Part shown: positions 13,550 to 34,300 of the stretch, piece after piece
How the letters are laid out: each line of letters starts with the position of its first letter
Numbering within the stretch: position 1 is the first letter of the stretch
Notes under the pieces: model-generated
The model's database searches: none
What the model was told of the DNA's origin: nothing
What the model saw: the letters and a program-made list of their open reading frames with translations, nothing else
NCBI RefSeq assembly: GCF_003704095.1
Contig: NW_020847584.1
Location: 186,001 to 250,000 of the forward strand
DNA from: Pocillopora damicornis
Taxonomy: Eukaryota
DNA length: 64,000 nt
Direction: 5' to 3'
Program-made: the position numbers and the translations under genes

Positions 13550-16500
13550 TTAGTCATCTCCGCCAGCGGAACTTGGAGTTTTAAAATATAGCAAGAAATG
13601 ATTGATGAGGTCATTCATTGTATCAGCTTGCACACTCCTGAAAGAGAAGGTCTGGGAACGAATTGTGTTCAGGACCAAAAGGGGATCCAGATACATTCCT
13701 TTCCTGAATACAAAACAAAAAGTTAACGTGAGTCATCCAATAGTTTATTATTGAGAAAGCAACATTTTCATGTACATGTAACCTTTTCCAGCTGTTTGGC
13801 ATACGTTAGTCAGACAGTCATTCAGACAGTTAGTCAGTCAGTAAGTCTATTAGACAGTTGTTTCTTCGGTCAGTCAGACAGCTGGTCAAACGGTCAACTG
13901 TCCAACTTTTCACACCCCAACGCCGACAAATCGAGATCCTAAGCATTTTGGCGATAATTCGAAACCAATTGAAGTCTCAACCCTGCTAAACGACAAACTA
14001 GCCAGCTACTGGAACAACCTTACATAAAAGTTGTCCTGTAATTAAAACCTAGTTCAACAGAATAATCCAAAATGCCAAAGTTTCGAATTTGGTTTGCTTA
14101 AATTTAACTTTTTCTAGCAAAAATTAATGCAAGGTGTTTTCATATCAAGGATCTCATTTAAAAGGACTTTTCCTTTTCTAAATAGTAATAGCAGAGGGTT
14201 TGAGCTCTCATGTTAAAGCATAAGACTTCTGTACGTAATAAGTGCTGAATCTCAATGTGTGTAACCAAGAGATCCCTTCTGAATCCACTAAGCATTCTAC
14301 AGACCTTACACTTGTCGCTTTCTTGATTTGAGAGTATCCCATACTAAGTAAGGGAGGACTGTCAGGAGTTTCAGATGACAAAACTTGAAATCTTTTTGAA
14401 TTGAAGGCGATTTTGACGGCGACTTTTGGAAGTTTTGGCCCCGATGACACAAATCCATCGAAAATTCTTGAGAAATCTCTGAACCAATTGCTGGCTGCAT
14501 AACGTACGATGTCTTGTTGCACAACCTCTACATTAGATCTCTCTTGAACGCGGGAACTCTTCACAACGATAAAAATAAAGAGCAATTTTTATTTTGAATT
14601 TTTATGTTTATCACAATATCCACCATTACATCTAAAATTACTTTCCCTTTCCCTTTCCCTACAACATTCTTCATTTTATGAACTTTAAACGATAATGTTA
14701 TCTTTTATTACATCCATTTTGAAATCATTGGCAATCCTTGCAATCTTATCAGTGTGATTTACAAACGAATCGGATCTAATTTTAATTGCTCTAAATCGCA
14801 TCCTTTTCCCAGCCAATAAGAAAGCAGCACTAAATCGAAACAACCAATCAGATTTCAAGGCCCATTTATAGTAACCGTAAAATAGCCACAATAATCTTTG
14901 AAACCTTTTCCCCTGAAAACCTTTCTTCTTCTTTTTATTCTTCTTCATCCGTTTCCATTAAATTTACAATCCTCGTCATCAAAGTAATGCTCGCGATTGA
15001 ACTCCAAATCAATCTACAAGAACACACATGTATTGTGAACAGGAAACTTACCGCATAAAAAGCTGACTTGACGTTACTGACAAGTTCGTCCTCTGAACTG
15101 TTAGCAAGTACAAATGGCGGAAAAGAAGCTTGGATAACCTCACGGAGTAAGTTTTCTTGTAATTCGGGACCATTCTCTATATAGTACCGTTTAGCCACAA
15201 TTTTAATCATTTCCTGTTGCTGCAATTAAGAATGAAATAAGATCGGCTCTACAATTCACCAGCTATCTCAAAACGGTTTGTCGTTCGTACGAGTTGTGCT
15301 GCCGTAGGGGCATTGTGGCGGATGTCCTCTCTGGAGAAAAATATATTTGACGTGAACCTACGCCGCATACGAGCGGAATAGTAGGGTTGACGACCGGCGA
15401 TGGGTAACCTCCTCCTCGTAATAAATAGAACAAAAAAACCGTTTCGAAAACATCTGGGAAAGCCTCAGCCAAAAAAGAAAAGGAGGGATTCGGATTATGT
15501 TCATATCAGCAATGAGTACTCGGACATCCTTTTCCCGTTTGGTTCTTACCTCACAGATGTACTCCTCAGCACGGATCCCTCCGACAATCTGATGGTAGAT
15601 CAGATTAGTGGCCACTTTGTCAATGCTGATATTTTCCGTGGGTGCAAATAAATCTTTTCGAAAGAATAAGTGCCAAGCACCAGACTCATTTAGAGTCTTA
15701 GAGCATGCATACTGCTCAGCTAAGGAGACGGCATCTAAAACACTCTCATTTCCACAGCCCCAGTTGGCAACCTGCGACAAAAAATAACAATCAACGGTAA
15801 TGAACTACGTTTACACTTTCGATCAGGTCCCAATAGCATTTGATCGTAGACCTCGTCAACCTGTCTACAGCCGTTTTGTTTTGTTTTGTTCTGTTTCTTT
15901 TGGTTTTTTGGGCGACGAAGCGTGATTCCCGCTTGCGACACTGAGTGTTAGGCGTGATGGTGACTACTGAGCGGGCAGAAGGACAAATGATGTCCGTGGA
16001 CATTCTTGGAAAAAAGACGCTTTTCATGATTCTACCCACGTCATAACCTTACCTTAAACCTTGCCTTAAACACAAATGACTTGATCAATTTAATTTACAG
16101 TGTTTAAGATGTCTCGTTTTTACCAAAAACTTCTTAGCACTGGTCTAATCTATGATACCCGGCGAACCTAAAACTGTGAAGAAATGTGAAGGCCACTGTT
16201 AAGAAGCCTCGTTACGGCGTCTAACCTGATTCAATGCTTCAATGAAAACGGAAAATCCAAAGATGTCCTTCAGCCCCAGTTCCTCTTTGATAAGCTGGCA
16301 CAGTTCAGCGCAAGTTGTGGCAGGATCCACTTCAAATACCTTCCTTGTTCCATCCATGAATATTACTGGCAGAGTAAGGGATGACTGCGATTTGACGGCC
16401 TGTGAATTAGATACCGACATTCCGTAAACTTCCACATCTTAGGAACTAATCCATTAGTTTCGGTGTGTCACCATAGCCCACAGGTTGGAATGTATTTAGG

Positions 16501-19197
16501 CTGCAGGAGGTTATAAAATCTCGGCAGATATGAAAGTGGTGAAACTTTCATTTAGCGGACACTCCCAAGAGGTTAAACATACTAAACCGACCATTACCCT
16601 TCTGCTAACTTGTAAATGACATTTTAATAAACTGAACAAATCTGTTAATCGTTTAAGATATCCTTAAATACGAAAAATTCAAAGGTAATTTTCTTGGAGT
16701 GTACATTTGATAGGGGTGTCCACAAAATATTGCGATACATTACGAGCCATGCAGTAAAACAATAAAAACGGAAAGGAATTCACCGTCTTGATCACTCACC
16801 TCCAATTCAACAATTGTAGAAGGCTGTGTTCTTGAACCTATTTCAAGAGTTCTCTGAAGAATCGAGTAGCAATATTCTCCAAATTTACCGGGGCCTTGTT
16901 TTAGAAAGTTTCTGAGGTAATTCAGCAGCTAACAACGAAAAAATGATTAATTTAGTTTGCAGCAGGCGGAGGAAAATACAGAAAAAGCGATTACAGTGTC
17001 AAGACAGCACCTCATCCGAAGGCGGGAAAACGCCAACGCAAAGGGCCAATAGAATCCATCCTCGGGTATAGCTTGTTGGAGAACCATTGTTTATTAGTTG
17101 GCGGCAAATTTGGCAGTAGATTTCATCCCTGTAATTAGATTAAAATGATAAGGATGACAAGCAGCAAAAAGCGAAAACAGATTTTCGTCTTTCTTGCTTT
17201 CCTTTCTTAAACTGGGGATACACATGACAGGGTCTCATTGATAAGTCTACAGAAGCAGAAAAGAGTGAAAAATGGGGGTACTTCTTATTCAGTAGGAAAT
17301 AAAAACCGTTTAGTATGGCCCAACCCAATTAAAGTAAAATAGTTTCCTTTTAGTTTTTCAGCTCTGAATGTTGTGGTGACCATCGATTGAGCTGGAATTT
17401 TATTGCAAGTAAACATTTAGGAAAATAAACAAAAAGGCGAAAAAATCAACAAAAAAACAAAGCAAAACGCCTCCTCTACATATTGCTCACCTTAAAGTCT
17501 GTCTACGTATTCCAAAGCTGGTGATAAACTGTATTTTCTCAACGTTTGTTGTGGGACGATTCATCATGATTAAAGGTGGAATGTCGTGAGATGTAAAAGA
17601 CATCTGTTGGGTCTAAAAAATATGTATCAACATGATCTTAAGAATAAATCCAGATCGAAAAACTTAAAAAATCGGACAAGGCAATGAGTAGCTATTGGGA
17701 AACATAACAGGTCGCACTCAGCCACTACAAGTTTTTTGAATGAATACGTAGCTTGCAATTCTTTAGAAACTATTGCAACCAATCCTTTATTGACCAAGCT
17801 TGTTCGATGGTAGTCAAGCACATTTATTGTAACAAGTTCTCCAGCCATCGCTAGCTTTTTCGAAGTTTGTCGACTTAAAAAAAGGTAACAATCAATGATT
17901 TCTGTGGGTGTCGGGAACAATCCCCTTCACACCCGTTGAAAACAATCCATTGCCATCCGGTCAATCATATTGGTACATTGAGTGGGAAGCAGAGGGTTTC
18001 AACAAAACAAATTAAGATAATGGGGAGTATAGAGTCCTTTCCCTGGTGAAGTATAACCAAGAGATTATAAACTGTTTATATTCTCTTGGCATAACTGAGT
18101 GCTTGCTCCTTTTCACCTTCTCAGAGACAACCTTCCTCTTGAACGTGGTTCCTGATGCATAGGCTTTGTCAATTGGCTGTGGCGTCTCTTTTACTTCTGA
18201 AACCTTTAAAAAAACATGAAGTATTTCTTTTCTGCATATTATTTTACTGCTACTTTATAAGGGAGTATTGTGATACGGTACGAAAGAAATAAAATGTGCA
18301 TTACAGCAACAAGCAAGCTTTAATTCGCGACAAATAAATACCATAATGTCTTCTTCGTCGAATTTTGGTTCTCCCATATCCCTCATGAATCGCAATATGG
18401 CGACAGAAATTGCACAGGACGCCTTTGAAGTAAACGGGAAATAATAGTATGTCATCAAATAAATCATGGATAAACGAAAAGATTATGTAAAAATATCCAG
18501 TTTTATCACTTATATATGTGACCTTAATTTTCATTTGATTGATTTAGTTTTAATATTCTGACTGTAGCAAAATTTTCCGAAATGTGTTGACCAGCTGTGG
18601 AATTTCATACTACCATTTCTTACATTCGAGCCGAAGTCATTTGATTAACTCCAGAAAATTCTGATAACTGTACGCAACTCAACCAGTTTACTCCTCGGGC
18701 TAGAAACGTATCTCACGGTCACAACTGTGATATCTACTGGGTGCCATTTTAAAATGGAATCGCTATTGTTATTTTAACACATTTATATTCTGCCTAATGA
18801 TCGATTAGATCAAAATGGTACAAGTGATTGATATGCATTACAAGTAGAAATTGTTACCTTCCTGTCGTCGATATTGTTGCAGTGTAAAAGAGATGACGTA
18901 AGAGGTACTCTTGAGAACTGGCATATTTCTCCATTTTGAAAATTGCTTTTGGCAAAACTTAGAAAATCACAGCTTGACAAATCATCAGGTTCCTGCATTT
19001 TCTGTTTACCACAACAAATAAGAGAAAACAAAGACTGCGTTGTAAAACTGACGTCATTGGAATGGACTGATACAATTTACAAAATCAATCAATTGGAGAG
19101 AGCAAGCTAGCTGTAAATGTTATCATAAGTCTTAGGAAAGGCCTGAGCACAAGACTAATGGACACTGATTATTTCTGACCTGTCTGTGAGGTTCCAT
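13550..19197 (-). CDS. Motor-less myosin VII tail paralogue: stand-alone MyTH4-FERM protein (~556 aa)
   Basis: Exons 19180-19197 (MEPHRQ), 18858-19001, 18342-18422, 18117-18203, 17491-17612, 17011-17128 ([11 protein letters not shown]...[16 protein letters not shown]), 16800-16928, 16226-16399 (LPVIFMDGT...TTCAELC...GFSVF), 15550-15771 ([10 protein letters not shown]...[13 protein letters not shown]), 15052-15219, 14305-14558, 13550-13703 (stop TAA). All introns are GT-AG and the total is 1671 nt with no frameshift. Colinear with the first MyTH4-FERM of myosin VIIa, ending just before the SH3. The start codon is inferred. Confidence 0.85.
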
Positions 19198-20559
19198 CCT
19201 GTTTGGTCCTGTTGTTGAGGTGTGGAAAAAGATGCGTGTCTCACATTTTAACCAACACCTGAAAAAATTAGTTAATAAACGAACCAAAAAACTAATTTAA
19301 AAATCTTCGACATCTGATTCGTCAATTCCTATAAAAGTTTATAGAAAAAAAAAGTGTTTGCGAATCTTTTTAAACTAAACCTTGCTTGTTATGCTTCATT
19401 TGCTATAAACAAAATGGCTGCTCTTTAATCGCTGCTCCTGTATTGGAACTGTTTGGCCATTTAACCAAACGACTTAGAGCTTTTGTTTCATTTAAGGCGA
19501 TGGTCGTTATTTGAGATGACTCAAAGGCGACTAAGCTGTGTTAAAACAATCAGAGAATACATCTGCGTGTAATAAACAACGAGTTAAAATTCTTCAGGAA
19601 TTTTCTATGCTATAATTTTGTATGCAATAATTTCACAAATAATTCTTTAATTCCGCTATATTACCGTGTGACTAAGTTATCTTACCTGGATAAACGACTT
19701 TACTTCCTTTTCTACTCTTTGGTCGAAGTTGATACTTCTGTAAAGTTCAACTTCACATCAGCGACATAAGCATGTTATTGTGACAATCGGGGTTTGAGGC
19801 GTGAGCCTGTTCAGAATCACAAAGAATAAAATGCTTTAGCGGTCATGCAGAACAGAACATTCCGGAATAAATTTGGAGCCGTCACACGCTAATTAAAGAA
19901 CAATTCACTCTTAAAAGTAATAACAAAACCCATTTCTACTGCACTTACTTGATTCTTGAGACAGACATTTCTGAGACGGCACTGTATACCAGGAATGCCA
20001 CAGCAATTCCAGACCCTCCCGGGCCAATGTGTGAGAATAAGACAGTAATTCATTTCCAGCGCTGACTCCGAAGGCGGCCACCCCAGGATGTGGCTCACCC
20101 ACCCCCCAAATATTAAAAAATGCAAATATTCATTGCATTCCATTCACAAATAACAAACTGACCAAGAGAAACACTCCAATAATAATTGGGTGAACAGACG
20201 TTAGCAAAAAAGCATGTTTCTTTCTATTTTGATTTAATTCTCAACCAATTTGATCATATTCGCCTTCTAACTATGACCCTTTTGTGACCCTTTTGTGTAT
20301 TGGTCCAAACACCAGCTTTTAAAACTGGTCCGCTATTTTTGTAACTGATTCCGCATTGAATACAAAATGTACATTATTCACTCTGCTCAGTACTTAATGA
20401 TCAAAGATAGCTATTCGCGAATTATTCCTGCTGCCTTTTAAAGAAATTTCCATAGATCAAAATATCAGTGACATCATTCCCGAAAAAATGGCTGGCTAAC
20501 ATTGTTCAAAATATCATTGGCGTCATTTGCGAAAAATGAACGGCTAATGACGTGTGAAG

Positions 20560-20700: not shown

Positions 20701-23509
20701 AGGTCTTAACCGCTTTGTCAGTAGGAAACAGAGAAGTTAGAATTGACTTTTTAATATCTTTCTCTATTTCTTATTAACTCTCCTTTCATATCAGACAAGG
20801 AATTTTCTCTCCTGTTACTTAAACGTAGAATTCCGTCAACGAACCCTGAATACCAGGCGCTCTTCGAGTAGTTGAAAATCTCACAAGTCAACTCAACTCC
20901 CATCTTAAAAATTCACATTTTTTTCACTGATTGTATATTTTGGAATCAAATTTGTCACAAGATTAACAAGCTGTTTTATTGGGCACGAGTGGAGGCTTAT
21001 CTACACAACGGTAGGTCATATGTGGTCTTCATATTTAGAATAACCTGTAGAAATTATGTTTAATTAACGATTTGGAGGGCCTTTGGGGGAGGAATTCATT
21101 AATAGCTAAGTTTCTAAACTTACAGGCGACAGTGCAAACTACATGTGTCAAGATACAAAATAACACACAGGTATGTTTACAACTCAATCTTTAGCCAACC
21201 AATAAAGAACTCAGCCATGTAATTAATTTGATGCAAAGTGTCAAATTTGATTTTGATTATTGTATCCGTAATTTGTCGATCCATTAGCTCTGTGGTTCAT
21301 CTGTAGTTCATGATTTAAAGTTGATTTGGTTTATATACATGGCAGTTCAGCTGACGCATTTGTATTTTGTGTGGGTTTTTCTAGTAGGCTTGCAGTCGTC
21401 ATCAACACAGAAATCAGGTGAGAAGACTGTGATTTTTGCCATCAACCTAAGGATTCAAACTCTTTCTCTTTTTGCTGAGTCTAATCATAGTGCTCGTCAG
21501 TATTGCACGTCACTGCCAAAATTTTCCATATCTTGAGCAACTGTTTATATTCCCCTTAATTTGACCTCAGTAGGTGGTAATAATGAATACAAATGTCGCA
21601 AAGGAACCTAGTAAGAGCTGATAACCGTAATTCCATGTAAAATTACATGTTTTGTTGGCTTAACAAGCTGGTGTCCACCCCTCTAATCAAACCGAGGACT
21701 AACTAATGTTTAGTTCGAAAAGTAAAAAGCTGCACTATTTAAAAGTGGTTTCTTGGAATTAGTGATTTTTTGGAATTACTTTGACAAAATATGCTATTGT
21801 AAAAAATCGTTCTGAGTCGTATGTAACGTTCACCTGTAAAACCTGCCAACAAATCAAACAAGTTCAAGAATACTTTATGTTTTGCAAGTTGTTTTTCATT
21901 TCAAACGTAGCATTTATTTGACGAAAATTTCATGGTCCACTAAGGCTAATGACATGAAGATAATAATGAGAACAGCATTGTTGGTCATGTTTTGTGGTCA
22001 GCTTTAAGAGTACCATCAATAATTTATAAGACGAGGATTTCTAGGTATCGATTCAGTTGTTAGGTGCCAAATTAGACATATTTCCTGTGTAATCCTCCGG
22101 ATAAGTGTGTCTAATTTTAGAAACTTTTATACTTTGATTATCAAACCTAACAACTCTTTCGTCCTGTCCCTGTCGCCACTTTCTTGTTACTTAGTCGCTC
22201 TCCATGTACAGGTGTCATTGTTTTGTTCGGTCATTGTTCAAATCTTACGGCCGTTGTCGTTGTCGTCATTGTTTACTGGTTTCACAAATTCTGAAGAGAC
22301 TTTTGCTATTTTGTTTATCCGTTTTAAGACTAATGTTGACTGAAGCGTGCCTTTAATTGACATATCGAGTTCCCAAAGTTTCCGTCTCTTCACAATTTTA
22401 CCCCTCCCATTTTGATTTCATCTGAGTAGAGAGACGTTTTTTGGACAAAAAATTCGAATAGGAGAAAGGTTTAGTGGTGAATTTCTTCTCGTGGAGAGAA
22501 ATGTTCGTGATGGGGACGAACTTGAAGCAGGCGGCAGTGCAATTAAGCGAACTGACATCCGTAAACCGATGATAACAAATGGAGTTTAAAAGAAGTAGTG
22601 GAATGATAAGCAATTTATCAAAAGGTTTGGAGCACACAATCACTGACAAATTCATTTCGTGAAAAGACTCGTAACTAAACACTAAAATTAAGGTAATTAT
22701 AATCATCCCTTCTATGAAAATCATCCGAGGCCCATAAAACTCGGAAAGGTTTCGGATGTAACCAACAGATATTTGTTGTTTTGACTGTTCAGCTTGGTTC
22801 ATGTCTTGAAGTGTGTAGAAAAGGGAAAATATAGGGTAGGAGGGAAGGTATTCGATTCGTGGTTTTCGTTAAAGGAGGTTTACATAATCATTAGCGGAGA
22901 CGACTTTTGAAACAAAGAAAAAGAAAAACTTTGATCGGATTTTTAGGTGACAACGATAGATATTACTTCTAGTAGAAGTATTTGATAATTGGTAAAATGT
23001 CACACCCAAAGTGCGTCCTAAAATTTGGACTAACATACAGGTAAGCGATGAGATAAAATTCCTCCCCCTAAAACCTTTCAAGGAAAAGCTGAAATCTATT
23101 CTTATTGAAAAGTTTTTTCTTAGACATTTTTCTAATTTTAATTTGTTGTTATTCCTCTCGCTTTTATTTTTTTTTCTGCTTTTTGTGTTTTGGGTAGGTG
23201 TGTTTGAACGGCTGGTACCTGACCCTAACATAGTATCTATCAATTAAATACCTAAGAACGGCTGTCCTATCTTTCTAACCTTTTATGGTTATTAAGGACA
23301 GCCTGTACTCTCTGTGTAGTTTATAATTGCAGCAATCTACTTGTAACTCTTGAGGACAAAAAAAACTCATCGTTGTTCTTGTTTAAGTTACTTTTTCAAT
23401 CCTCTAATAGGAAATTTCTTACTCTTACTGGTTTTTCCGTATGTGAGAACTTAATCGTTGAAGTGGCTCGCTTAATGCGACTCCTGACAGATTTCTATTT
23501 CGTTTGTAG

Positions 23510-26500
23510 GAAAATTATGCAACTCACCGCTGGATATCATAATAGCTTTGGATGCGTCTGGTAGTGTGCTTAAAGGAAACTGGGATAAAAGCGTAGATTT
23601 TGCCTCGCAGCTCGGCAAGAAGTTACTTTCCTGGAATGCAAAAAGTCGCATAGGAGTCATTGACTTCAGTGAGATTGCTAATGAGGTTATTGAACCATCC
23701 AGCGACCAAAAGCTTTTGGAATGGAAGTTAAATAACCTGAAAAACAATTATCAAAACGGAATCACGAGAACAGAGTTAGCCCTGAAGAAGGCGGCTGAAA
23801 TATTTCAGCGAATCGACCGAACATTCGCGAAAAAACTGCTATTGATATTGACTGATGGTCAAACGACACCACTAAACTACAAGCAAGGAAAAGAACTAAT
23901 TCAGGAGCCTATGGCCAGCCTGAGAACCATAGGGGTACATGTGATTGCTGTAGGTGTTGGCATGTTGGTTGACAGTGAGGAGTTGAACATTATGGCCTCT
24001 GAACCGACAAATGAAAACGTAATTTATTTCCAGGATTATGATGTCCTAAATATGGTGGATTCAATAACTCGGGTCGTTTGTTTAGCAGAAGGTACAAAAC
24101 CAAGCGCTATACTTTGTTCTAAAATAAATTAGAGATATAGAAATTTGAAACAAAAATTCATCTTTTCAATTCTTGTTTTTTTTCTTGATAGATACTTATA
24201 TTGATTATAACTTGTAGCACAAAAGTAAAAAAGGGTAGCACATTATACAAATGAACTTTATGGTATTGATAACTGAATGATAATGATGATGTCTAATGAT
24301 GAAAAGAAGCTCTAATGCTAATAATTATCCCTATTTTATGATAAATCTTCGAGAACCCCTAACTTGTTTCAGAGCCCCAGTCCCCCGAGTCTCCAGTGCC
24401 GTATGTTGCTGCCGTCGAACCTGTCAGCTCAAGTAAGTATGCACATGCTTCTTTTAGATATAGAATTTAAACCAATGAAAGTAACAGTATCATAAAACTA
24501 CGGCAAAGCTCGACGATTTTTTTCAGAAAGTGAAGTCTTGAACTTACGTCATTTGTGTCACCCTCTGGATTATCTTACCATTTGATCTTGCTCATGTTGT
24601 TGTCTACGGTTTTCTTTGGAATCATAAGCCTCTCGCTTTCCTCTCCTGTTTGTACCGGCCGTGTTAACTATCATCTCTCAGTATAGACTGTACTCCTTAT
24701 TTTCCTATAATTCACTCCTATTGGCGTATATATGTCTATCATACTTTTTTTCGATTAGGCTGCGATTAAGCATCAACTCACTTTTCACACTTTCTCAGTA
24801 AACGACATATCCATACCAAATTTGCTCCAAAATCAATGAAGACGACGAGATCCCATCCCCTGCCACCCTTCGAGCGCCATATTAACATGAATTAAAATTC
24901 TTCGCGCGATAAATAATCGTTGTTTTCGTACTTGTTGTAATCTGTGAGTCTTTTTCCTCCAAGTATGCATGTTTCATTCACTAAATAAATTTTCCTAAAT
25001 TCATCTCCTATTTAACGGTGTTAATATTTTAACAAGAATATTCTAGGAATTTTTGGTCATAAAATTGGTTTTTCTTTTTCCTCTGATGTAACAGCATGTC
25101 CTGCTAAGTACACTAAAGTAGGCTGTTTTAAGGATGACATGAAACTCCCACGCCCTCTTCCAAAGTTGCTTTTCACCGACCGCGACTCAGCGACTAAGAA
25201 GTTTAGTGGTAAATCAGTCGACTGGCAGGACTGGAATTCTTACATTAACGACCTCGTCTGCCGTTGTGCAAAGGAAGCAAAAGTTCGCAATTATGCATAT
25301 TTCAGTATTCAGTTCTACGGTAAGTGACATAATCATCAACAGAATTGACACCAAGGTCTGACGCCAAATACAAAAAAGATGAGTCCTTGTAGGCCATGAA
25401 ACAAGCGAAATTTCGGGTAAAGTTTGGCGGTCTTGATAAAAACCCTTTGCTCGACATATGTTCCAAAATTGTATTAGCTTTTTAGTGAAAGCCTGTCGCT
25501 TGAAAACCTTTTCTTCGTGCTAAACTGGTTAATTCTTGTTCCAAAGTTTATTATTTCAAGAGTCATTAGAACTCAAACACGACATATTATTTCAACTTAA
25601 GGTTAAGTAACTTATTTTCTCTACAGGCGAGTGTTGGTCTGGTCCACAGGCGCAAGAGACGTACAACAGGGCTGGTGCCAAAAATACATGCATTACGAGT
25701 AATTTTGAGAAGTGCGATGTTTCTGATTCAAAGATATGCGTTGGAGAAAAGGAAACCAACTTCGTGTATGAAGTACAAAGAGCAGGTAACGTAAAACAGG
25801 ACATCTCAGTAAGAGCTAGGAGTATATAATTTTAACAGTTAAAATAACATCATGTTAACATGATGCTGAAAGCAAGAATCTCATTGCCGGTGATAGATTC
25901 ACACCAAGAGATTATTATATTCTTGGTTCCCACCAAATCTACTTCAGTGAAGAAAAATGGAGGGTAACCAAAATTAGACAAGGTAACACGCTCCTGGAGG
26001 ATCACCCTGAGCCTGCATAACAATTTGGTCACAGAACTGCTAATTCAAGTTCGGTCGTCTGCAACGGTAAGGATGTGTTGGCTAACAGTCTATCATGTTT
26101 TTGTCATAGTCACATATGTATACTTGTATGTCTGTCTGTCTGTTTCTGTAGTATGTATGTATGAATGTACGTATGTATCTATGTATGTATGTAGTGTCCA
26201 TTTTTAAACGATGTCTTACCTCAGTGGGAGGCTATTTGCCTTACGCACTTTTCTCTTTTTCTTGTTGGAAGAGGCTGAACCAATTATATGCATACATGTA
26301 TGTCTGTCTGTCTGTAGTATGCATATATGAATGTACGTCTGTATCTATGTATGTATGTAGTGTCCATTTTTAGACGATGTCTTACCTCAGTGGGAGGTTA
26401 TTTGCCTTACGCACTTTTCTCTTTTTCTTGTTTGAAGAGGCTGAGCCAACATGTGGAGTAGAATATCACAAACTCGGATGTTTCAAAGACAACAAAAAGG

Positions 26501-29144
26501 GCCCTCGGCTTTTAAATAAACTCATATTAACTGATCGCGATTCCAAGTCTCCTGTTTACAGTAATATTAAGATAGACTGGGGGAATTGGAACGCGTACTT
26601 GCCAAAGTTAGCATGCAGATGTGCGGAGAAGGCTGCAGACAACAAGTTCACCCATTTTGGCTTACAGTTTTACGGTGAGGAGGTTTAGTCTTGAACAATA
26701 TTATAGACAAATGTTATTTTAACGAAAACTTTGATAGGTGGAGAGGTTGGACCCAAAAAACAAAACTACCGAGAAAGTAAAGGAACCTCCATTGCCCTAC
26801 AGTTTGGCTTGTTAGCTCAGTTGGTAGAGCACTGCACCGGTATCGCAGAGGTCATGGGTTCAAATCCCGTACAGGCCTGAAGTTTTTCAGACTTTATTTT
26901 CACTACCGCTCAAGTAGTGTTCATTACTGCGAAGATCGCCTTCATATTCACGTCTTTGTCCGCAGTTCAAATCCATGATTTTCATATATTCACAATCAAG
27001 TATTATTTAAGTAGCAAGAACTCAGTTGACTAAGGTTATTGATCACCAGAAGTTTTTGGATTTTACCTCCATAAATAATGTGAGCTTCTAATGGTAAACG
27101 ACTTCAGGGAAACTCTAGTTCCTTAAGCATATACTTATAGAATGACACATTCTATATGATAACACTCATGCATGTGAACTTGTTTTACTTCTCCTGCGAG
27201 TGCTCTTGTATATTGCTCAACTGCTCTCGCAATTGAGTTAAATTGCTGTCATTGCCTATGAAATCTGTATAGCAGAACTTGTTCACCTCGAAGTTTGATG
27301 GAGATTGAAATATCCAAGCATTGCTTGAACGTTCATATCAACTTTTCTCTGGGCATATCCTTCTGAACAGGAGAATGTTGGTCAGGTCCAGAGGCCGCTG
27401 AAACATATAACCAACTTGGTCCTGCTTCAGCAGACAGCTGTTTGACCAGCGACTATCAGCCATGCCCTGAGGATCCAAAATCTACAGACATAGAGTGTGT
27501 AGGAAAACTCTTCGTAAACTATGTTTACACCATAATAAAGAGTGAAGGTAATATCGTTACGTGCAGTTTAGCAGGCGTTGCTTTTACAGAAATTACTAAG
27601 CAGACATGCTTCTCGTTTTACCATTTGAACGGAGAAACTCACAATTCCTTTCCACAGAATAAGGTAGATGATTACAGCCAGTTCTTAAAGGAGGATATAA
27701 CAAAATCTCAATGGATGAATTCTTGCCCTAAGTTTGTAGGGCTTTCAGCATTGCATTCTTGAACAGAAAGTCCGCAGTCAGTCAAGTTGATGAATCTTTG
27801 TCGTTTTCGTTAATATATTGACTTAAGGTTTAACCAAGTTACCAATTAGAGTGGATAAATGAATAAATGAGCCCCGTAGAGAATAGGTATCGACGTGGAT
27901 CGTGCTTCAGATGTAAAAAAAAAATATTGGCACTTTTCCAATGAATATACTGAGTTCTATTTAAGATGTCGAAGGACTGTGATTACCAGGTAGCATGCAG
28001 ACAAACGAGTGACCCACAACAAATGAACGATGGAATTTATCCTTACTCTTGATCTGAATAAGATAAGTGGCCCATGCTATGGTCTCAGCTGGTTGCTTCT
28101 CATAACTCAGCAAGTACGTGCTCGAAAATCAGTCAAGCTGTCGTTACCTTATCTCAGTCTATTGATAACTATTTTCATTTGGTTTAATTTGCAGCGTTTT
28201 ATTAAAACCATCCATTAACCACTTTGTGACTTCTTAGGAATATGTCATACCACTCTGGTTTTTGGGCTTTTTCAGATGCACGTTGTTCAGTTCCTTTTAA
28301 ACCTGTTGGCTGCTTTAAGGATAATCAGAAGAAGAATGCTCGACCACTCGGTGAACTGCTTCTTACATATCGCGACCGAAAAAGTGCCAAAAATAACGGA
28401 ACTGAAATTAATTGGGGAGAATGGGACGTTTACTTGTATGAGTTGGTGTGTCTCTGTGCCCAGAAGGCAAAGGAAAAGAAATACTCCCACTTTGGGTTGC
28501 AGCATTACGGTAGGCGAACACGTGCGACAGAACACACTTGCACAATAAAATCACTGATACGGGTTTTTTTTTTCAAGCCCTAATTTTGCTTGACAAGACA
28601 TTGTAACGTAGAGGAAGGTAGCTGAAAAGTTACCGTCCAATTTGTAAACATTGTAACTAGTGACTCTGGATAGCTTCGTATAGTTAATTCATAAAGTCGG
28701 AATTCAGATATCATCTTAAAACTTCATATAAATGTTTGTTTCCTTAAACCTAAACACCAAAACTTTTAAGATCGCATCGTTTATTCATCTAAAACATGTA
28801 TATTTCCATCAGTTATAGAACAAAATTCCACGTGACGTTCTATTCTCGCTGGATCCCCTGAATCCCAAAAACCGACAAAAAATTAATCCTATTACGCTCT
28901 CTATTTCCCACAAAATATATTCTCTGCCAGGACCCGAAGTACCGGCTACTGTTTGATTCAAAGCAATTTTTATTGTTCCTAAGGTGAGTGCTGGTCGGGG
29001 CCTGAAGCAGGCGAAACATTCAGCAAGGATGGACCTTCAGAGGCAGATAAATGCATTGGTCGAGGATTTAAAACATGTAACGCCTTGGTTGATGACATCT
29101 GTGTGGGAAGGGAAAAGACTAACTTTGTCTTCTCTCTTTACTAG
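23510..29144 (+). CDS. Gene A: predicted secreted protein, VWA + Pro linker + three 8-Cys WSC-like domains (5' exon(s) unresolved)
   Basis: Exons 23510-24091 (whole VWA: LDIIIALDASGS, GITRT, LLILTDG, VIAVGVG), 24373-24432, 25095-25319 + 25627-25785, 26438-26674 + 27371-27547, 28276-28509 + 28984-29144 (TAG). All introns are phase 1. One candidate signal exon is MKIIMRTALLVMFC at ~21954-21996, not confirmed. Confidence 0.85.
26116..26450 (+). repeat. Tandem duplication (period ~166 bp) including TGTC/TATG microsatellites and a splice acceptor
   Basis: ATGTCTTACCTCAGTGGGAGG at 26211 and 26377; GAAGAGGCTGA at 26268 and 26434. Confidence 0.9.
26806..26995 (+). mobile_element. tRNA-derived SINE with a tRNA-like head (GGT at the anticodon position), in an intron of gene A
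   Basis: 26806-26878 folds as a cloverleaf (GGCTTGT/ACAGGCC, GCTC/GAGC, CTGCA/CGCAG, ATGGG/CCCGT). It has an A box TAGCTCAGTTGG and a B box GGTTCAAATCC. C at position 33 and an A-C mismatch argue against a functional tRNA. The ~120-bp body that follows resembles, from recall, an abundant coral repeat. Confidence 0.7.
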
Positions 29145-29431
29145 TACGAAGAAAATAAAAAAGTACAGCAATCAACAGGCTAATTTAAAGTGTCAAGTGG
29201 TTTATGTTGGATATGGCTGGAACCAGAGAATACAAACAACTTAATTGCTCTTACTTTTCGGAAATTCAAAACGGTCCGATTTATCTGGCAAATTAAAACC
29301 TTACGAGGCAGTCCGATTCTTGCATCCACCAGCTTTCTTTTGTCATAGACAATTAGAGGTCAGATAAATTGCGTGTGAATTGACTGACGATATTAAAATC
29401 TTTACCGAGTGTGAATTGCCTTAGGATCGTC

Positions 29432-29568
29432 GGATCAATATCAGTATCTGGGCAACTGCCCACCTACCCCTCCCCTAACCCAACATTAACCTTAACTTGT
29501 TGTCAATTGACTGTTGTTGAGTTAGGGGAGGGGTAGGTGGGCAGTTGCCCAGATACTGATATTGATCC
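29432..29568. mobile_element. MITE (137 bp) with 48-bp perfect terminal inverted repeats and an 8-bp target-site duplication
   Basis: TIR GGATCAATATCAGTATCTGGGCAACTGCCCACCTACCCCTCCCCTAAC and its exact reverse complement. The direct repeat GGATCGTC lies at 29424-29431 and 29569-29576. Confidence 0.9.
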
Positions 29569-30839
29569 GGATCGTCTCTCAAAGCCATTTTACCTCTTAA
29601 ACCCGTCCTCTCCCCCCCCCTCAAAAAAAAAAGAAAACAAAACAAAATCTTCTCCTTGACTCAAATAACAAATAACCATAGTTGTTTCTGATGCTTAAAG
29701 ATTAATAAACCCTAGCAAAGTCAAATCAACAGCAGCGTGATATTTCCTCATTTTACGATATGAATAAAGGACCTCTCTAGGAAATAATGCAGCGGTCATT
29801 TTTTATCCGGGCACCGCCATTTGGATCGTGTGGCGTTTCATAGTTTCCACTATTGACTATAAGTTCCTTTTGGGAATGCTGCAAACAGAGGACTCGAACA
29901 TCAGCCTATAATGATCAAAAAAATGCTCGCTGAAAGCCTCTTTTTGAAGCTCTTGAAATGCTTTATTTCTGATAAGACTGAACAAATCAACCTTGAAAAA
30001 AAACACATCGCAAAAAGCCTTAAAACATAAAATCTATATCATTCTCCTTACTTCATTCATCTTGATGAAAAGGAATCGCTCGAAAAAGGAACCGTTTGAG
30101 GCCGCTTTATTCCGCTATTGTTCTCAAGAACTCTCATTTCGTCACCTTGACCAAACCGAACGAAACCAAATTCAAACTACACGCGCTCGGTGGCCGCCGA
30201 AGCGAGTTTCCTAAAGAGACTTCTGAGCCTACAAGCCAAAATATATAGCCGGATTACCCATTTTGGAAGTGGAAAGGCATGCTGGCTTTTTCGGGGTATG
30301 CAGTTTCTTTATCTTAATAGACTTTGGACATTTCTTTGCATGACCGAGCTATAATGCCGTCTTAATCTGACGTAAGTCTTGGATCTGTCAGACAATCTTA
30401 CCTTATCGAAGTCGAACGGGTCACGCCCCGTGAAGAAAAAAGTTTCCATTACCTTAATACGAGTCAAAATGGTTGTTTTCAACGCCATAGTGACAAAACT
30501 GTTACCCACGTCGGGATTACTCTCTGAATAACATGATTCTAAACAGGGTGCTTTTTGTTATGTCTAGTAAAATATTGTATCTTTCTGTCTCTTTTGGATT
30601 TGACCGAGACTCGCTGTTATCGAGAGAAAATGATAAAACACTATTTTCTATTGCTATTACTTAATATTTCGCCTCACCCTCATGCACTCACTACGGCGAG
30701 TCTATCAAACGATTTAATGATTGGTCGGGATTTTTCCTTACGGACCGTTTCCACGGAAACGGTCATAAACCGTGTATTTTTGTTTCCTAAAGCCGGCAAA
30801 TTCAAATTAATCAAGTTTGGTCCGAGTGCCATATGATAA

Positions 30840-30992
30840 ACTACTTAGTCACCTCGCTTGCTCTACTGGGTCTTATTGGGGATGATTGGCCCTCCGTCGT
30901 TTTTGCACGGACCCCGCTGCACTCGGTCCCGACTGCCACGACCTTGGGCCAACATTCCCCACTGCGGCCCTTGCGCTCGCTCAGTAAGAAGT
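30840..30992. repeat. Imperfect palindromic MITE-like repeat
   Basis: GC-rich island with nested inverted repeats (TGGGGATGATTGGCCC / GGGCCAACATTCCCCA; GGACC / GGTCC; CTTAGT-like / AGTAAG ends). Confidence 0.45.
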
Positions 30993-31392
30993 AAATTTGG
31001 TACAAAAAGATGTATAAAGAAAGGTTGATTAAACTGTAACAGACAGGTTAGCCGGTCACGAGTACCCTCCTCCGGTAGTTTTGTTCGGTTGTATCAGAAG
31101 TCCGGTTGTATGTTGTTATGTAACCGAATTTGTACTTTCAGACTGCCGACAATCTACCCGGTATAAACGGCGCTAAATAATCTTTAGCCGGACTAAATTT
31201 TGTGTTCATTAAACAGAACGGAAAATTTCAGGCAGCGTTCGTTGGACGCACTATGATAGGTTATGTGCCTATGGGCAAAAATATGTTTACGTAATATTTG
31301 AGAAATTCACTGGTCCATGACAAACTGACAGTTGGAAAACATCAGTTCAATTTATGAAATCTCCTGAATGGCAATATTGAAGTATGTCTAAT

Positions 31393-34300
31393 ATGAATGC
31401 ATCATTTTTTCTGGCCTTTTTATTTACATATCTATCAATATCAGGAAAGTCTGACGCTGATTTCCGTAAAGGTATGTTTTGATAATTAACGAAAGAGAAG
31501 GTTTGTGCTTTCTCGCTTTACATGCACTGGACACCCCCTCCCTGAAATGAATAACAGAAAATGAATAACAGAATGTCTCTGGCTACACTGACACAATAAC
31601 AATTTCTCTTCTATTAATAATTTGGGGGAAAATGTTTCCATAAGCTTGGTTTCTTCATCTCTATTTATGGTGATTAATGTTCATTCCACTTCAAGCTAAC
31701 ATTGTTGATTTCGATGGACTTATATATAGATTCATTTCTATTGTCCCTCTGGAAAATATTGTTTTGAAATCATGCAAAGTAAGAGTTAAAAGAGTCACTA
31801 TTGAAGTTCATAAATGGGGAATAACTATAATTTATCATCTCGCTCACTCTGTTTTAGATTGCGTGTGGAAGATAATTTGATATTCTTGTCAGCAGAAATG
31901 CGTTAACTATTCATAAATTTGATAAAATCTGTCACCATTTTTGAACAAGCGTAGGAGTTGTAAAGAGAAAGAAGAATGAGACGTAATCAAAGAGAGATCT
32001 GTAGTAAATTGACAAATCCTGCAAGTTAGTAGGTTCCACAGTTTTTGCAACCCTTTGTCGTTGTCAGACAGCCTTGATACTTGTTTATTCGCAGCTCGGT
32101 AACTTTAGATTGCAGGTGTTAAGATTGTTGGTTGTCCCTTAATATGCCAAACCGCAGGGCATAAAGATTTAGCTTAATCAAGGAGAAGTCACCATTTGAG
32201 GCCGTGAAACGTATGGGTTTATATGCAAATACTAGTTATGGTGAACTTTACATGTTTAAAAAAATGGTCTCGAATAACAAAGATCATTCTTCGACTTTTT
32301 TCCTTGATGTAGACTCTCGTCAATAAAACTATTCCACCCCGCTGATTGTGGCCATGGCAAATTGCTTTTATGTGACTGGTTCTTCGTAACCTTTTAGTGC
32401 AGGTTGACCGACTTTTGCGGGCCGAAAGAGTTTGATTGAACCCTTCTGATTACACAATTATAGACCATATATATTACACTCGGGAGGACGAGTTGTCTCG
32501 CCTTAACTGGTAAAGTAACCCTGTCAGGCGGGACAACTTATTCTTATCCAAGCACCTCAGCTCACCTTCCTGACCCGAGGCTCAGGCAATGAGTATTTCT
32601 TTTTGGGTAAAAAGTAGCGCCAGGAAAATATTAACAACCATCGATAATACTTCGGTCAGACGTGGAAGCAAAAACTCAATACTGATTGTTAATCCTTTCC
32701 TTCGGTCTGCCATTTTGTACAAAATGTAACCTGCCTATCTGTCACGATAGTGACAGATTGGCAGGTTTCATTTTCACCCCACCGCTGGTGAGGGGACAGC
32801 TGTTATAACTCACAACCCTATATCAAAGCTCCGTTAAGTTGTCTCGAGGAGGAGCCTGGTTGCCTCGTGCACCTGAGACCATACAGTAGGGTTTAGCCGT
32901 CTTCTGCATCCTAAACTATAAACTAAGTTATGTTGTAACAAGCTTCCTGCATGTTGTTAGGATCAGCAATGTTAAATGCGTCGTTCAGAAAATAAGATAA
33001 GAAAGATGGTTGAGTTTGAGCTCGTTCATGAAATGAACTTTCCTTTCCATTTCATGAGCGCACTCAAAATTTACCGTCTTTCATATCACGCATGTTTAAT
33101 TCTCAACGTTAGTAGAGGCAATGATTCAATCAATGTGAGAAGGGAAGTGAGGATGGAAAATCACTAATATTTATGAATTTTCACCATTACCGAAGCACTA
33201 AATCTAATGAGACTTTTCATTTATTTTTTAAAGAAAACCCAGCAAATTCTTCCTCTCTACCCATGTCTGTTTCGTGGTCGGAACCTATGTGGAACCAATT
33301 TAATGCATACCAAAAGACTGGTACCGGAATACCTGCTCCACCAACGACTCACAGCACTCCTCAAACTTTACCAGCACTGCAACTCAGAGGACAAGGAGCA
33401 CCAGTAGCTGAACCTGTATCACTGCCTCGACGATATTCTGTGTGCCCTATGCCTACATGCAGCTTTCCATCTATTTGCGTTAAAGTAGCAGTTTATGCGA
33501 CTTGTGTTCCTCCTCCTAATCCATCAGCATCCACCAACAATTCATNNNNNNNNNNNNNNNNNNNNNNNNNNNNNNNNNNNNNNNNNNNNNNNNNNNNNNN
33601 NNNNNNNNNNNNNNNNNNNNNNNNNNNNNNNNNNNNNNNNNNNNNAACTAAAACACTTACGGCAACCTCCACGAGTGTGGTGACCACTTGTAGCGCTAGT
33701 TGCTTAACTGTGGGTAAGTGTACGTTTTTCCGAGACGGAGTGGTGGAGAGGTTAATACAGATTGGCCATGGTTTGATATTTTCTCTTAAGAAAAGAATGG
33801 CAAGGACACCTACGGATTTCGCTGTAGAGCTTTTAATTTTTGCTCAGATAATTTTAGCTGTATGTAATACAATTTAATCTTTCTGGGTATTTTTGGTCCT
33901 TACCAATTTTCCCCTCGAAGAGCTCGCGTCATATCGGCCACAAGCTCCAGCCATGTAATATGAATACAACAGTCAAACGTCTGCGCATGCGAACGTTGTC
34001 ACTACTAGGTGGCGTGCTTTCAGGCTGCCAGTACCAAATTTATCTCACACGAGTTACAAAAACCACACAAGCTAGAAAGTCACGGTTTTAGAACCGCAAG
34101 AACTTTATTGATGTAGTCCAAAACGGAAAGGTGAATCAGCCGGATACCCGTGCTTGAATGAGCTTTGTGTTCAAAAAGTTACAGCAGTTTTGACACAAAC
34201 GAGTTTCCTTTTCCCTAATTTATTTTCCTTTTAACAAATTTCTATAAAAGTCTTTTTGGCTCACAAGGCGAAACAGCAGTTATTTCTATGAAATAGTACT

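Follow-up and report, generated by a model that had tools for sequence, protein, structure and literature searches.

A separately encoded, motorless MyTH4-FERM gene of myosin VII type lies upstream of myosin VII in the coral Pocillopora damicornis

The DNA analyzed here, referred to as the window, is a stretch of 64,000 nucleotides from Pocillopora damicornis (NCBI RefSeq assembly GCF_003704095.1, contig NW_020847584.1; C4219:186001-250000 in the coordinates used below), taken from a scaffold-level draft assembly of 234 Mb in 4393 contigs. Its minus strand carries, upstream of a complete myosin VII gene, a gene for a MyTH4-FERM module of the type found first in the myosin VII tail (MF1; the second, C-terminal module is MF2) that has no motor, and which is called the headless gene in the following. 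The exon model was obtained by listing the open frames of the minus strand and placing the splice sites by hand. It comprises 12 coding exons at window 19197-13550 (-), with AG/GT at every border, and its open reading frame (ORF) spans 1671 nt and 556 codons, with a TAA stop and zero internal stops. A first-pass annotation, made by a model from the letters alone, had described twelve GT-AG exons and an ORF of about 556 aa at this place; the rebuilt 556-aa translation was 100% identical to the RefSeq protein XP_027058854.1 (P0331, "myosin-VIIa-like isoform X1"). The observation of an intact headless gene is confirmed, and RefSeq already contains the gene model, in correct form.

The transcription of the gene was followed in assembled RNA contigs from four polyA/oligo-dT studies, which were placed on window 13400-19399. 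All 11 coding introns were spliced at the coordinates of the model, as seen from joints or from loose ends of contigs. Loose ends at 19261 mapped to 19689-19718, which indicates splicing from an exon that ends at 19686. That exon, noted in the first-pass annotation as an upstream donor exon with an in-frame stop, is real and is a 5' untranslated region (5'UTR) exon of the same mRNA. Four assembled transcripts (L006-L009, 2.65-2.69 kb), each encoding the full 556 aa, aligned as 13 exons with every coding intron removed, so that the independent transcript proposed as a check was found. Their 3' ends lie at 12744, 12741, 12712 and 12655, and L008 is flanked by sequencing adapter on both sides, which suggests that its two ends are real fragment ends. 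The 5'UTR (19686-19803 and 19198-19261) holds an in-frame TAA 81 nt ahead of the ATG and four upstream ATGs, which open upstream ORFs (uORFs) of 1-6 codons, none of them in frame with the main ORF. The headless gene has its own transcription start, its own stop and a polyA signal, and its mature mRNA measures about 2.7 kb.

The RefSeq isoforms of the headless gene are all between 447 and 556 aa long. A minor isoform of 549 aa (P0337) skips exon 1 and starts at Met8, and a contig joining exon 0 to exon 2 was present in run X12. An annotated 447-aa isoform has a different C-terminus past residue 421, which truncates the third FERM lobe (F3), and in Orbicella an annotated form of 442 aa is without the equivalent of exon 9 (annotated isoforms P0332, P0337 and P0159). 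Among the annotated isoforms, the exon 1 skip alone was visible in the RNA contigs examined. Two peculiarities of the RNA data concern introns. At window 19172, 8 nt into intron 1 on the minus strand, contigs from X1 and X12 run on for at least 255 nt past exon 1; this extension had no match in the window or in the whole assembly (<=2 mismatches), and it could be an insertion in another haplotype or species, or a chimeric contig. Intron 10 contains, at window 14704-14877, a repeat of about 175-185 bp that is dispersed through the genome (335 or more candidate copies at 74-79% identity) and that explains a very high RNA depth, odd short joints (14727 to 14792, 14836 or 14839) and several loose ends in the RNA data.

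The domain content of the gene product was determined from Pfam searches made per exon and from whole-protein analyses of the identical database protein XP_027058854.1. Single exons matched Pfam MyTH4, RA_2/FERM_N and FERM_C1_MyoVII, and the whole protein matched MyTH4 at residues 137-234, RA_2 (the F1 lobe) at 241-331 and FERM_C1_MyoVII (F3) at 450-544. In the full protein Pfam returned no Myosin_head and nothing beyond the three MyTH4-FERM domains; there was no match to a PH domain at E <= 0.01, and only about 130 residues lie ahead of the MyTH4 core. The best match by sequence in the PDB was 3PVL, the MF1-SH3 part of mouse MYO7A with Sans (E 5.5e-107, 35% identical, residues 9-544 onto chain residues 27-567), and the second was 5F3Y, the MF1 of MYO7B with ANKS4B (E 1.2e-85). 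Weaker matches were obtained to MF2 structures (about 1e-25), Dictyostelium myosin VII (2e-20) and myosin X (3e-8).

An AlphaFold prediction made with an alignment of 13 orthologs had a pLDDT of 50.8 and was discarded, and a 67-row alignment was used instead. The resulting model had a pLDDT of 85 and a pTM of 0.84, with the helical F2 lobe above pLDDT 90 and predicted disorder limited to residues 1-6, 77-119 (the MyTH4 loop) and 549-556. A Foldseek search with this model returned 3PVL first (TM 0.82) and then 5F3Y, the same ranking as the sequence search. The protein stops 9-12 residues past the C-terminal helix of F3 and has no SH3, no second MyTH4-FERM module and no IQ or single alpha-helix (SAH) region. 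On the evidence of the Pfam matches, the 3PVL match and the predicted model, the headless protein comprises an entire MyTH4-FERM supramodule of the MF1 type and terminates at the point at which the SH3 domain of myosin VII would start, in keeping with what had been read from its motifs. Because it has no motor, the product is not a myosin, and the database name "myosin-VIIa-like" misleads.

A complete myosin VII gene (motor, IQ, MF1, SH3 and MF2; about 2190 aa) follows downstream on the strand of the headless gene, extending from C4219:197413 to about 169063, with about 1.3 kb between the polyA signal of the headless gene and the start codon of myosin VII. The first coding exon of this myosin VII and exon 1 of the headless gene are equal in size (6 codons) and in phase (0). 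Exon 1 of the headless gene (MEPHRQ, phase 0), which would fit in frame to 9563, was considered as a shared first exon of myosin VII and was ruled out by the MVIVSK exon at 11413-11396. In the chromosome-level assembly of P. verrucosa (L011:17739) the MVIVSK exon is the annotated start of the coding sequence (CDS) of a 2193-aa myosin VII; the locus is about 98% identical throughout and the order VWA/WSC gene, headless gene, myosin VII is preserved. The upstream neighbor is a VWA plus WSC-repeat gene at window ~23500-33000 (+), which is divergent, with about 3.7 kb between the 5' ends, and has its counterpart in a VWA/WSC product of 638 aa in P. verrucosa. Matches to Myosin_head on contig C4219 were confined to window 2859-7994, with none above 7994, and when the motor, IQ and SAH regions of two myosin VII proteins were compared by tblastn with window 12001-64000 and the next 10 kb, only noise resulted. 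The first-pass annotation had reported an upstream gene on the opposite strand and no upstream motor exons, and both statements were borne out. Its tandem arrangement directly upstream of a full myosin VII holds for Pocillopora and fails for Nematostella, where the ortholog is flanked by genes for an ABC transporter and for TSP1/Vps62, and no myosin gene is found within 10 kb. The coordinates of the exons are collected in the table.

Table. Exons of the headless gene and the first exons of the neighboring myosin VII gene (window coordinates; M2, M6, M7 and M10 are exons of the myosin VII MF1)
Feature	Position	Strand	Evidence or remark
Exon 0, 5'UTR exon	19686..19803	-	L006-L009 alignment; transcript 5' ends 19780-19803; in-frame TAA; short uORFs
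Exon 1, rest of 5'UTR, ATG at 19197-19195 and 6 codons (MEPHRQ), phase-0 donor	19180..19261 (coding 19197-19180)	-	RNA joint 19001/19180 in 4 runs
Exon 2, 144 nt, N-terminal helix region of MF1	18858..19001	-	RNA; aligns to 3PVL from chain residue 27
Exon 3, 81 nt, MyTH4 N-terminal helix; length equals that of M2	18342..18422	-	RNA, exon comparison
Exon 4, 87 nt, start of disordered MyTH4 loop	18117..18203	-	RNA joints 17612/18117 and 18203/18342; pLDDT <50 at residues 77-119
Exon 5, 122 nt, ends ...LR, phase-2 donor	17491..17612	-	RNA
Exon 6, 118 nt, MyTH4 core	17011..17128	-	Pfam MyTH4, E 3.6e-15, single exon
Exon 7, 129 nt, MyTH4 end; length and phases equal those of M6	16800..16928	-	Pfam, RNA
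Exon 8, 174 nt, FERM F1 lobe; length and phases equal those of M7	16226..16399	-	Pfam RA_2, E 5.2e-14; RNA
Exon 9, 222 nt, F1 end and F2 start	15550..15771	-	RNA; query of the ortholog library search
Exon 10, 168 nt, FERM F2 lobe	15052..15219	-	RNA; helical in predicted model
Exon 11, 254 nt, F2 end and F3 start; phase-2 donor, like M10	14305..14558	-	Pfam FERM_C1_MyoVII, RNA
Exon 12, F3 end, TAA at 13552-13550, 3'UTR of about 0.8-0.9 kb	12655..13703 (coding 13703-13550)	-	RNA contigs; AATAAA at 12731-12726
Myosin VII first coding exon, MVIVSK, phase-0 donor (GT), outside the headless gene	11396..11413	-	Annotated CDS start in P. verrucosa
Myosin VII exon 2	9450-9563	-	Further motor exons follow, down to window position 1 and past it

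Orthologs were sought by a library search with exon 9 alone, which yielded full-length proteins of 539-557 aa, followed by protein searches and cluster look-ups. Headless orthologs of about 540-570 aa were found in three Pocillopora and five Acropora species, Oculina, Orbicella, Desmophyllum (partial), further coral transcriptomes and Nematostella (XP_048588922, 567 aa; XP_048588923, 539 aa), which amounts to at least eight scleractinian genera plus Nematostella. The ORFs are intact and of near-constant length in at least 12 species from both scleractinian clades and Actiniaria. The Pocillopora protein is 57-73% identical to its orthologs in Scleractinia and 37% identical to that of Nematostella, and 118 alignment columns are invariant among 13 orthologs. 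The ratio of nonsynonymous to synonymous substitution rates (dN/dS) was 0.25-0.34 in pairwise comparison of two moderately diverged corals (dS about 0.2) and 0.14-0.18 between Pocillopora and those two corals, at a dS of about 1.1 that is near saturation; neither range is near 1. Within the genus, P. damicornis and P. verrucosa differ by 0.6% in the CDS and by 1.9% in the introns, and the dN/dS of 0.41 comes from 10 coding differences only and carries little weight. Judged by these comparisons, the headless gene is under purifying selection that is moderately relaxed.

The origin of the gene was addressed by comparing it with its neighbor. The MF1 exons of the neighboring myosin VII (M1-M11) were built by coordinates, all with GT-AG borders and an open frame, and the proteins were then aligned. 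The headless protein and this MF1 are 38.6% identical. Nine of the ten introns match: five occupy an identical alignment column and phase, and the other four agree once the uncertainty of the gaps is allowed for. Three exons have the same length in both genes (81, 129 and 174 nt). Myosin VII has an extra exon of 93 nt (M4), which encodes the charged MyTH4 loop and is absent from the headless gene. The introns at MF1 positions indicate a DNA-level duplicate of myosin VII tail exons rather than a retrocopy; a processed copy is ruled out by the 12 introns, most of them at parental positions. The duplication is old and not recent, because the two proteins have diverged so far and because both scleractinian clades and Nematostella have orthologs. 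The partial DNA-level duplication proposed in the first-pass annotation is therefore retained on the strength of the shared introns and exon lengths, with its date corrected.

One intron gives a view of the ancestral state. The phase-2 intron at LR/DEIY, which had been put forward as a myosin VII intron position, is present in the headless gene, its Nematostella ortholog, an amphioxus gene with MyTH4-FERM only (MF-only) and the canonical myosin VII of a clam, and is absent from Pocillopora myosin VII; as a myosin VII intron position it therefore holds outside human. Its occurrence in clam myosin VII and other lineages indicates that it is an ancestral intron that was lost in Pocillopora myosin VII. 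From these positions it appears that the headless gene keeps an older exon structure than the myosin VII beside it.

A maximum-likelihood (ML) tree was rooted with MF2 and two protist proteins as outgroups; the other MyTH4 loci of the coral (C666, C781 and C1921) were too diverged for tblastn assembly. The hexacorallian headless sequences formed a clade (100/100) inside the MF1 group, which was itself split from MF2 (100/100). The stem of the headless clade measured 0.88 substitutions per site, and the canonical MF1 branches were short. In the approximately unbiased (AU) test, a position as sister to cnidarian myosin VII MF1 had p 0.435 and a grouping with bilaterian MF-only genes had p 0.403, so that neither placement, and hence no cnidarian-specific duplication, was rejected.

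Myosin VII, Sans and harmonin anchor cadherin links in stereocilia and microvilli. According to one report, the hair bundles of sea anemones use homologous parts, with a cadherin-23 homolog among them (PMC3899209). In MYO7B, the CEN2-binding site of the MyTH4 domain is defined by the triple substitution A1128E-R1129E-K1192E, which abolishes the binding of ANKS4B and SANS (PMC5493754). The headless counterparts of A1128, R1129 and K1192 would be T172, R173 and K236, as placed by motif spacing rather than by alignment to the human protein. R173 is kept in 10 of the 13 orthologs, and the residue at K236 is Lys in 12 of them and Arg in the remaining one (Nematostella).

These observations are best explained if the locus is an independent, functional gene for a stand-alone MF1 module, without motor, IQ, SAH, SH3 or MF2, whose product serves as a soluble scaffold or competitor for a myosin VII adaptor; the probability of this reading is put at roughly 0.7. 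The headless MF1 would bind the same kind of adaptor as the MF1 of myosin VII (Sans/ANKS4B type), and such binding is likely because the MF1 fold is complete and basic MyTH4 residues that motif spacing assigns to the CEN2 site are kept. An adaptor held by a motorless MF1 would have no attachment to actin. The protein might then be a soluble scaffold, or a competitor that governs the supply of adaptor to the motor-bearing myosin VII. This particular step, i.e., binding of an MF1-type adaptor without coupling to actin, is perhaps a little short of an even bet. Autoinhibition of class VII myosins is ascribed to their C-terminal FERM (MF2), and as the headless protein has no MF2, direct inhibition of the motor by it is unlikely.

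Several points weigh against an adaptor scaffold or competitor. The dN/dS of 0.14-0.34 is looser than expected of a core cytoskeletal domain, and R173 is replaced by Ser in three Acropora sequences. The residue numbers of human MYO7B were transferred to the coral protein via motif spacing, and the functional argument as a whole is built on sequence, RNA contigs and a predicted structure. Assembled contigs are blind to rare junctions (e.g., read-through into myosin VII), to strand and to expression level. The tandem position beside myosin VII was seen in the genus Pocillopora only, among the two genera, Pocillopora and Nematostella, whose genomic context was examined.

Some of the same facts would fit a functional gene that works by another mechanism, with ligands outside the myosin VII adaptor complex (e.g., microtubules via MyTH4, or tails of membrane receptors via the FERM groove), as a general cortical adaptor that does not depend on myosin VII. 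The long stem beside short canonical MF1 branches, the identity of just 38.6% to the neighboring MF1, the Nematostella ortholog that is unlinked to myosin VII, the loss of R173 in Acropora and the missing charged loop exon M4 all point that way. However, the closest structures are ligand-bound MF1 modules of MYO7A and MYO7B, which match better than MF2 by 20-80 orders of magnitude and better than myosin X by about 99, and most basic residues placed at the CEN2 site are kept, so that a wholly different set of ligands is judged improbable, if by no means negligible. The headless mRNA might instead be an alternative product of a single myosin VII transcription unit, through a shared promoter or first exon or by read-through, as in headless Myo10. 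The two genes lie on the same strand with only about 1.3 kb from polyA signal to start codon, and exon 1, which has 6 codons and a phase-0 donor, would splice to myosin VII exon 2 (9563) without a shift of frame, just as the first coding exon of myosin VII, likewise of 6 codons and phase 0, does. Yet myosin VII has the MVIVSK start exon of its own, annotated as the CDS start in P. verrucosa, all four full-length transcripts terminate in the AATAAA region, no RNA contig on the stretch connects headless exons to myosin VII exons, the RefSeq isoforms are all of 447-556 aa, and the gene stands alone in Nematostella. This possibility is largely refuted and is given very little credence.

A transcribed but functionless partial duplicate in slow decay would be compatible with the within-genus dN/dS of 0.41, on its 10 differences, and with a gene product known from RNA and sequence alone. 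It is strongly disfavored, and slightly less credible still than a single transcription unit, given that ORFs of near-constant length are intact in at least 12 species of both scleractinian clades and Actiniaria, that dN/dS is 0.14-0.34 on the longer branches, that divergence in the CDS is a third of that in the introns and that 118 columns are invariant in 13 orthologs. The assembly, a scaffold-level draft of 4393 contigs with runs of N inside the window, also raised the question of whether the exons are the misplaced tail of a motor-bearing gene, a mis-assembly that the first-pass annotation had itself named. This was refuted for practical purposes, since the P. verrucosa assembly, which is chromosome-level, shows the same gene order at about 98% identity, spliced full-length mRNAs agree with the genome, and 12655-19803 contains no gap. 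The interpretation given in the first-pass annotation, a separately encoded cargo decoy, adaptor or regulator for myosin VII, was in sum partly supported.

Compared with the MF1 modules of MYO7A and MYO7B (3PVL and 5F3Y), the headless protein has the same N-terminal helix, MyTH4 with a disordered loop, F1, F2 and F3 over the full length; it shares intron positions with the coral's own MF1 and keeps most of the basic residues that motif spacing assigns to the CEN2 site. In contrast to these modules, it is encoded by a gene of its own, detached from motor, IQ, SAH, SH3 and MF2, has no charged loop exon and sits on a long branch. Headless myosin X (Hdl-Myo10) is a brain isoform without the motor that is proposed to regulate the full-length motor (PMC6345916, PMC5725431). 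The two are alike as motorless products that retain the MyTH4-FERM cassette of a MyTH4-FERM myosin, but Hdl-Myo10 is an isoform of Myo10 with neck, coiled-coil and PH domains, whereas the coral gene is a separate, ancient duplicate with MF1 only. A headless isoform of the Myo10 kind was ruled out by the gene's own 5' and 3' ends, the separate myosin VII start exon and the stand-alone Nematostella gene. Separately encoded motorless MyTH4-FERM proteins are also found in animals as PLEKHH1/2/3 and C. elegans MAX-1, which have PH domains and are not known to derive from class VII. Membership in the PLEKHH/MAX-1 group was ruled out, there being no PH match and the closest relatives being myosin VII MF1 modules.

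With respect to annotation the locus is ordinary, as the correct gene model already existed. A full-text search of a literature library found no paper describing the headless gene, and the single match for its RefSeq name concerned another accession. If the adaptor reading is correct, a conserved gene for the half of the tail that binds the adaptor, with no motor attached, would constitute a natural, genetically separable means of tuning the myosin VII complex, and a ready-made "dominant-negative" for work in Nematostella, a species in which genes can be knocked out. The headless gene also illustrates that catalogues of myosins based on the motor overlook tail-only descendants, and that automatic names such as "myosin-VIIa-like" mask proteins that are not myosins.

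Motorless genes of the MF1 type were also found outside cnidarians. In amphioxus, such a gene (P0147/P0355, 757/756 aa; L021 10001-23148) lies between carboxylesterase and MutS5 genes, and the annelid Ridgeia has a protein of 633 aa (P0356; L022 10001-26109); one more motorless protein with the same three domains (876 aa) came from a single transcriptome. The amphioxus and Ridgeia models resemble the coral protein in having no motor, the same three Pfam domains and a place in the MF1 group of the tree, and the amphioxus gene likewise stands alone between unrelated genes and has the LR/DEIY phase-2 intron in common with it. They differ in carrying additional sequence at the N- or C-terminus, and their identity is only about 30%. 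The shared intron is uninformative on a common origin with the amphioxus gene, because it is ancestral to myosin VII. Forcing the cnidarian and bilaterian MF-only genes into one clade cost 0.03 log-likelihood units, which neither supports nor rejects a common origin, for a group that consists of long branches throughout and was named after the tree had been seen, and which is a lead rather than a result. The hexacorallian, amphioxus and annelid MF-only genes and the Logan transcript P0186 might belong to one ancient metazoan family of motorless MF1 paralogs that arose before the cnidarian-bilaterian split and was lost in vertebrates and ecdysozoans, and that supplied a soluble partner or brake of the cadherin-anchoring complex of myosin VII, Sans and harmonin in microvillar mechanoreceptors; at present this is an unlikely, speculative extension. 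Such a family, if real, would have been missed by inventories of myosins because these were built from motor domains. A pan-eukaryotic survey of myosins, for example, builds its MyTH4-FERM tree from head domains (PMC3942036), so that the headless gene could not be listed there.

The library search with exon 9 returned one further protein of unusual composition. This protein (P0001, 2760 aa) contained 50 separate matches to the 74-aa segment encoded by exon 9 (E 8.7e-112). It may consist of a FERM fragment repeated in tandem, or the model may be mis-assembled.

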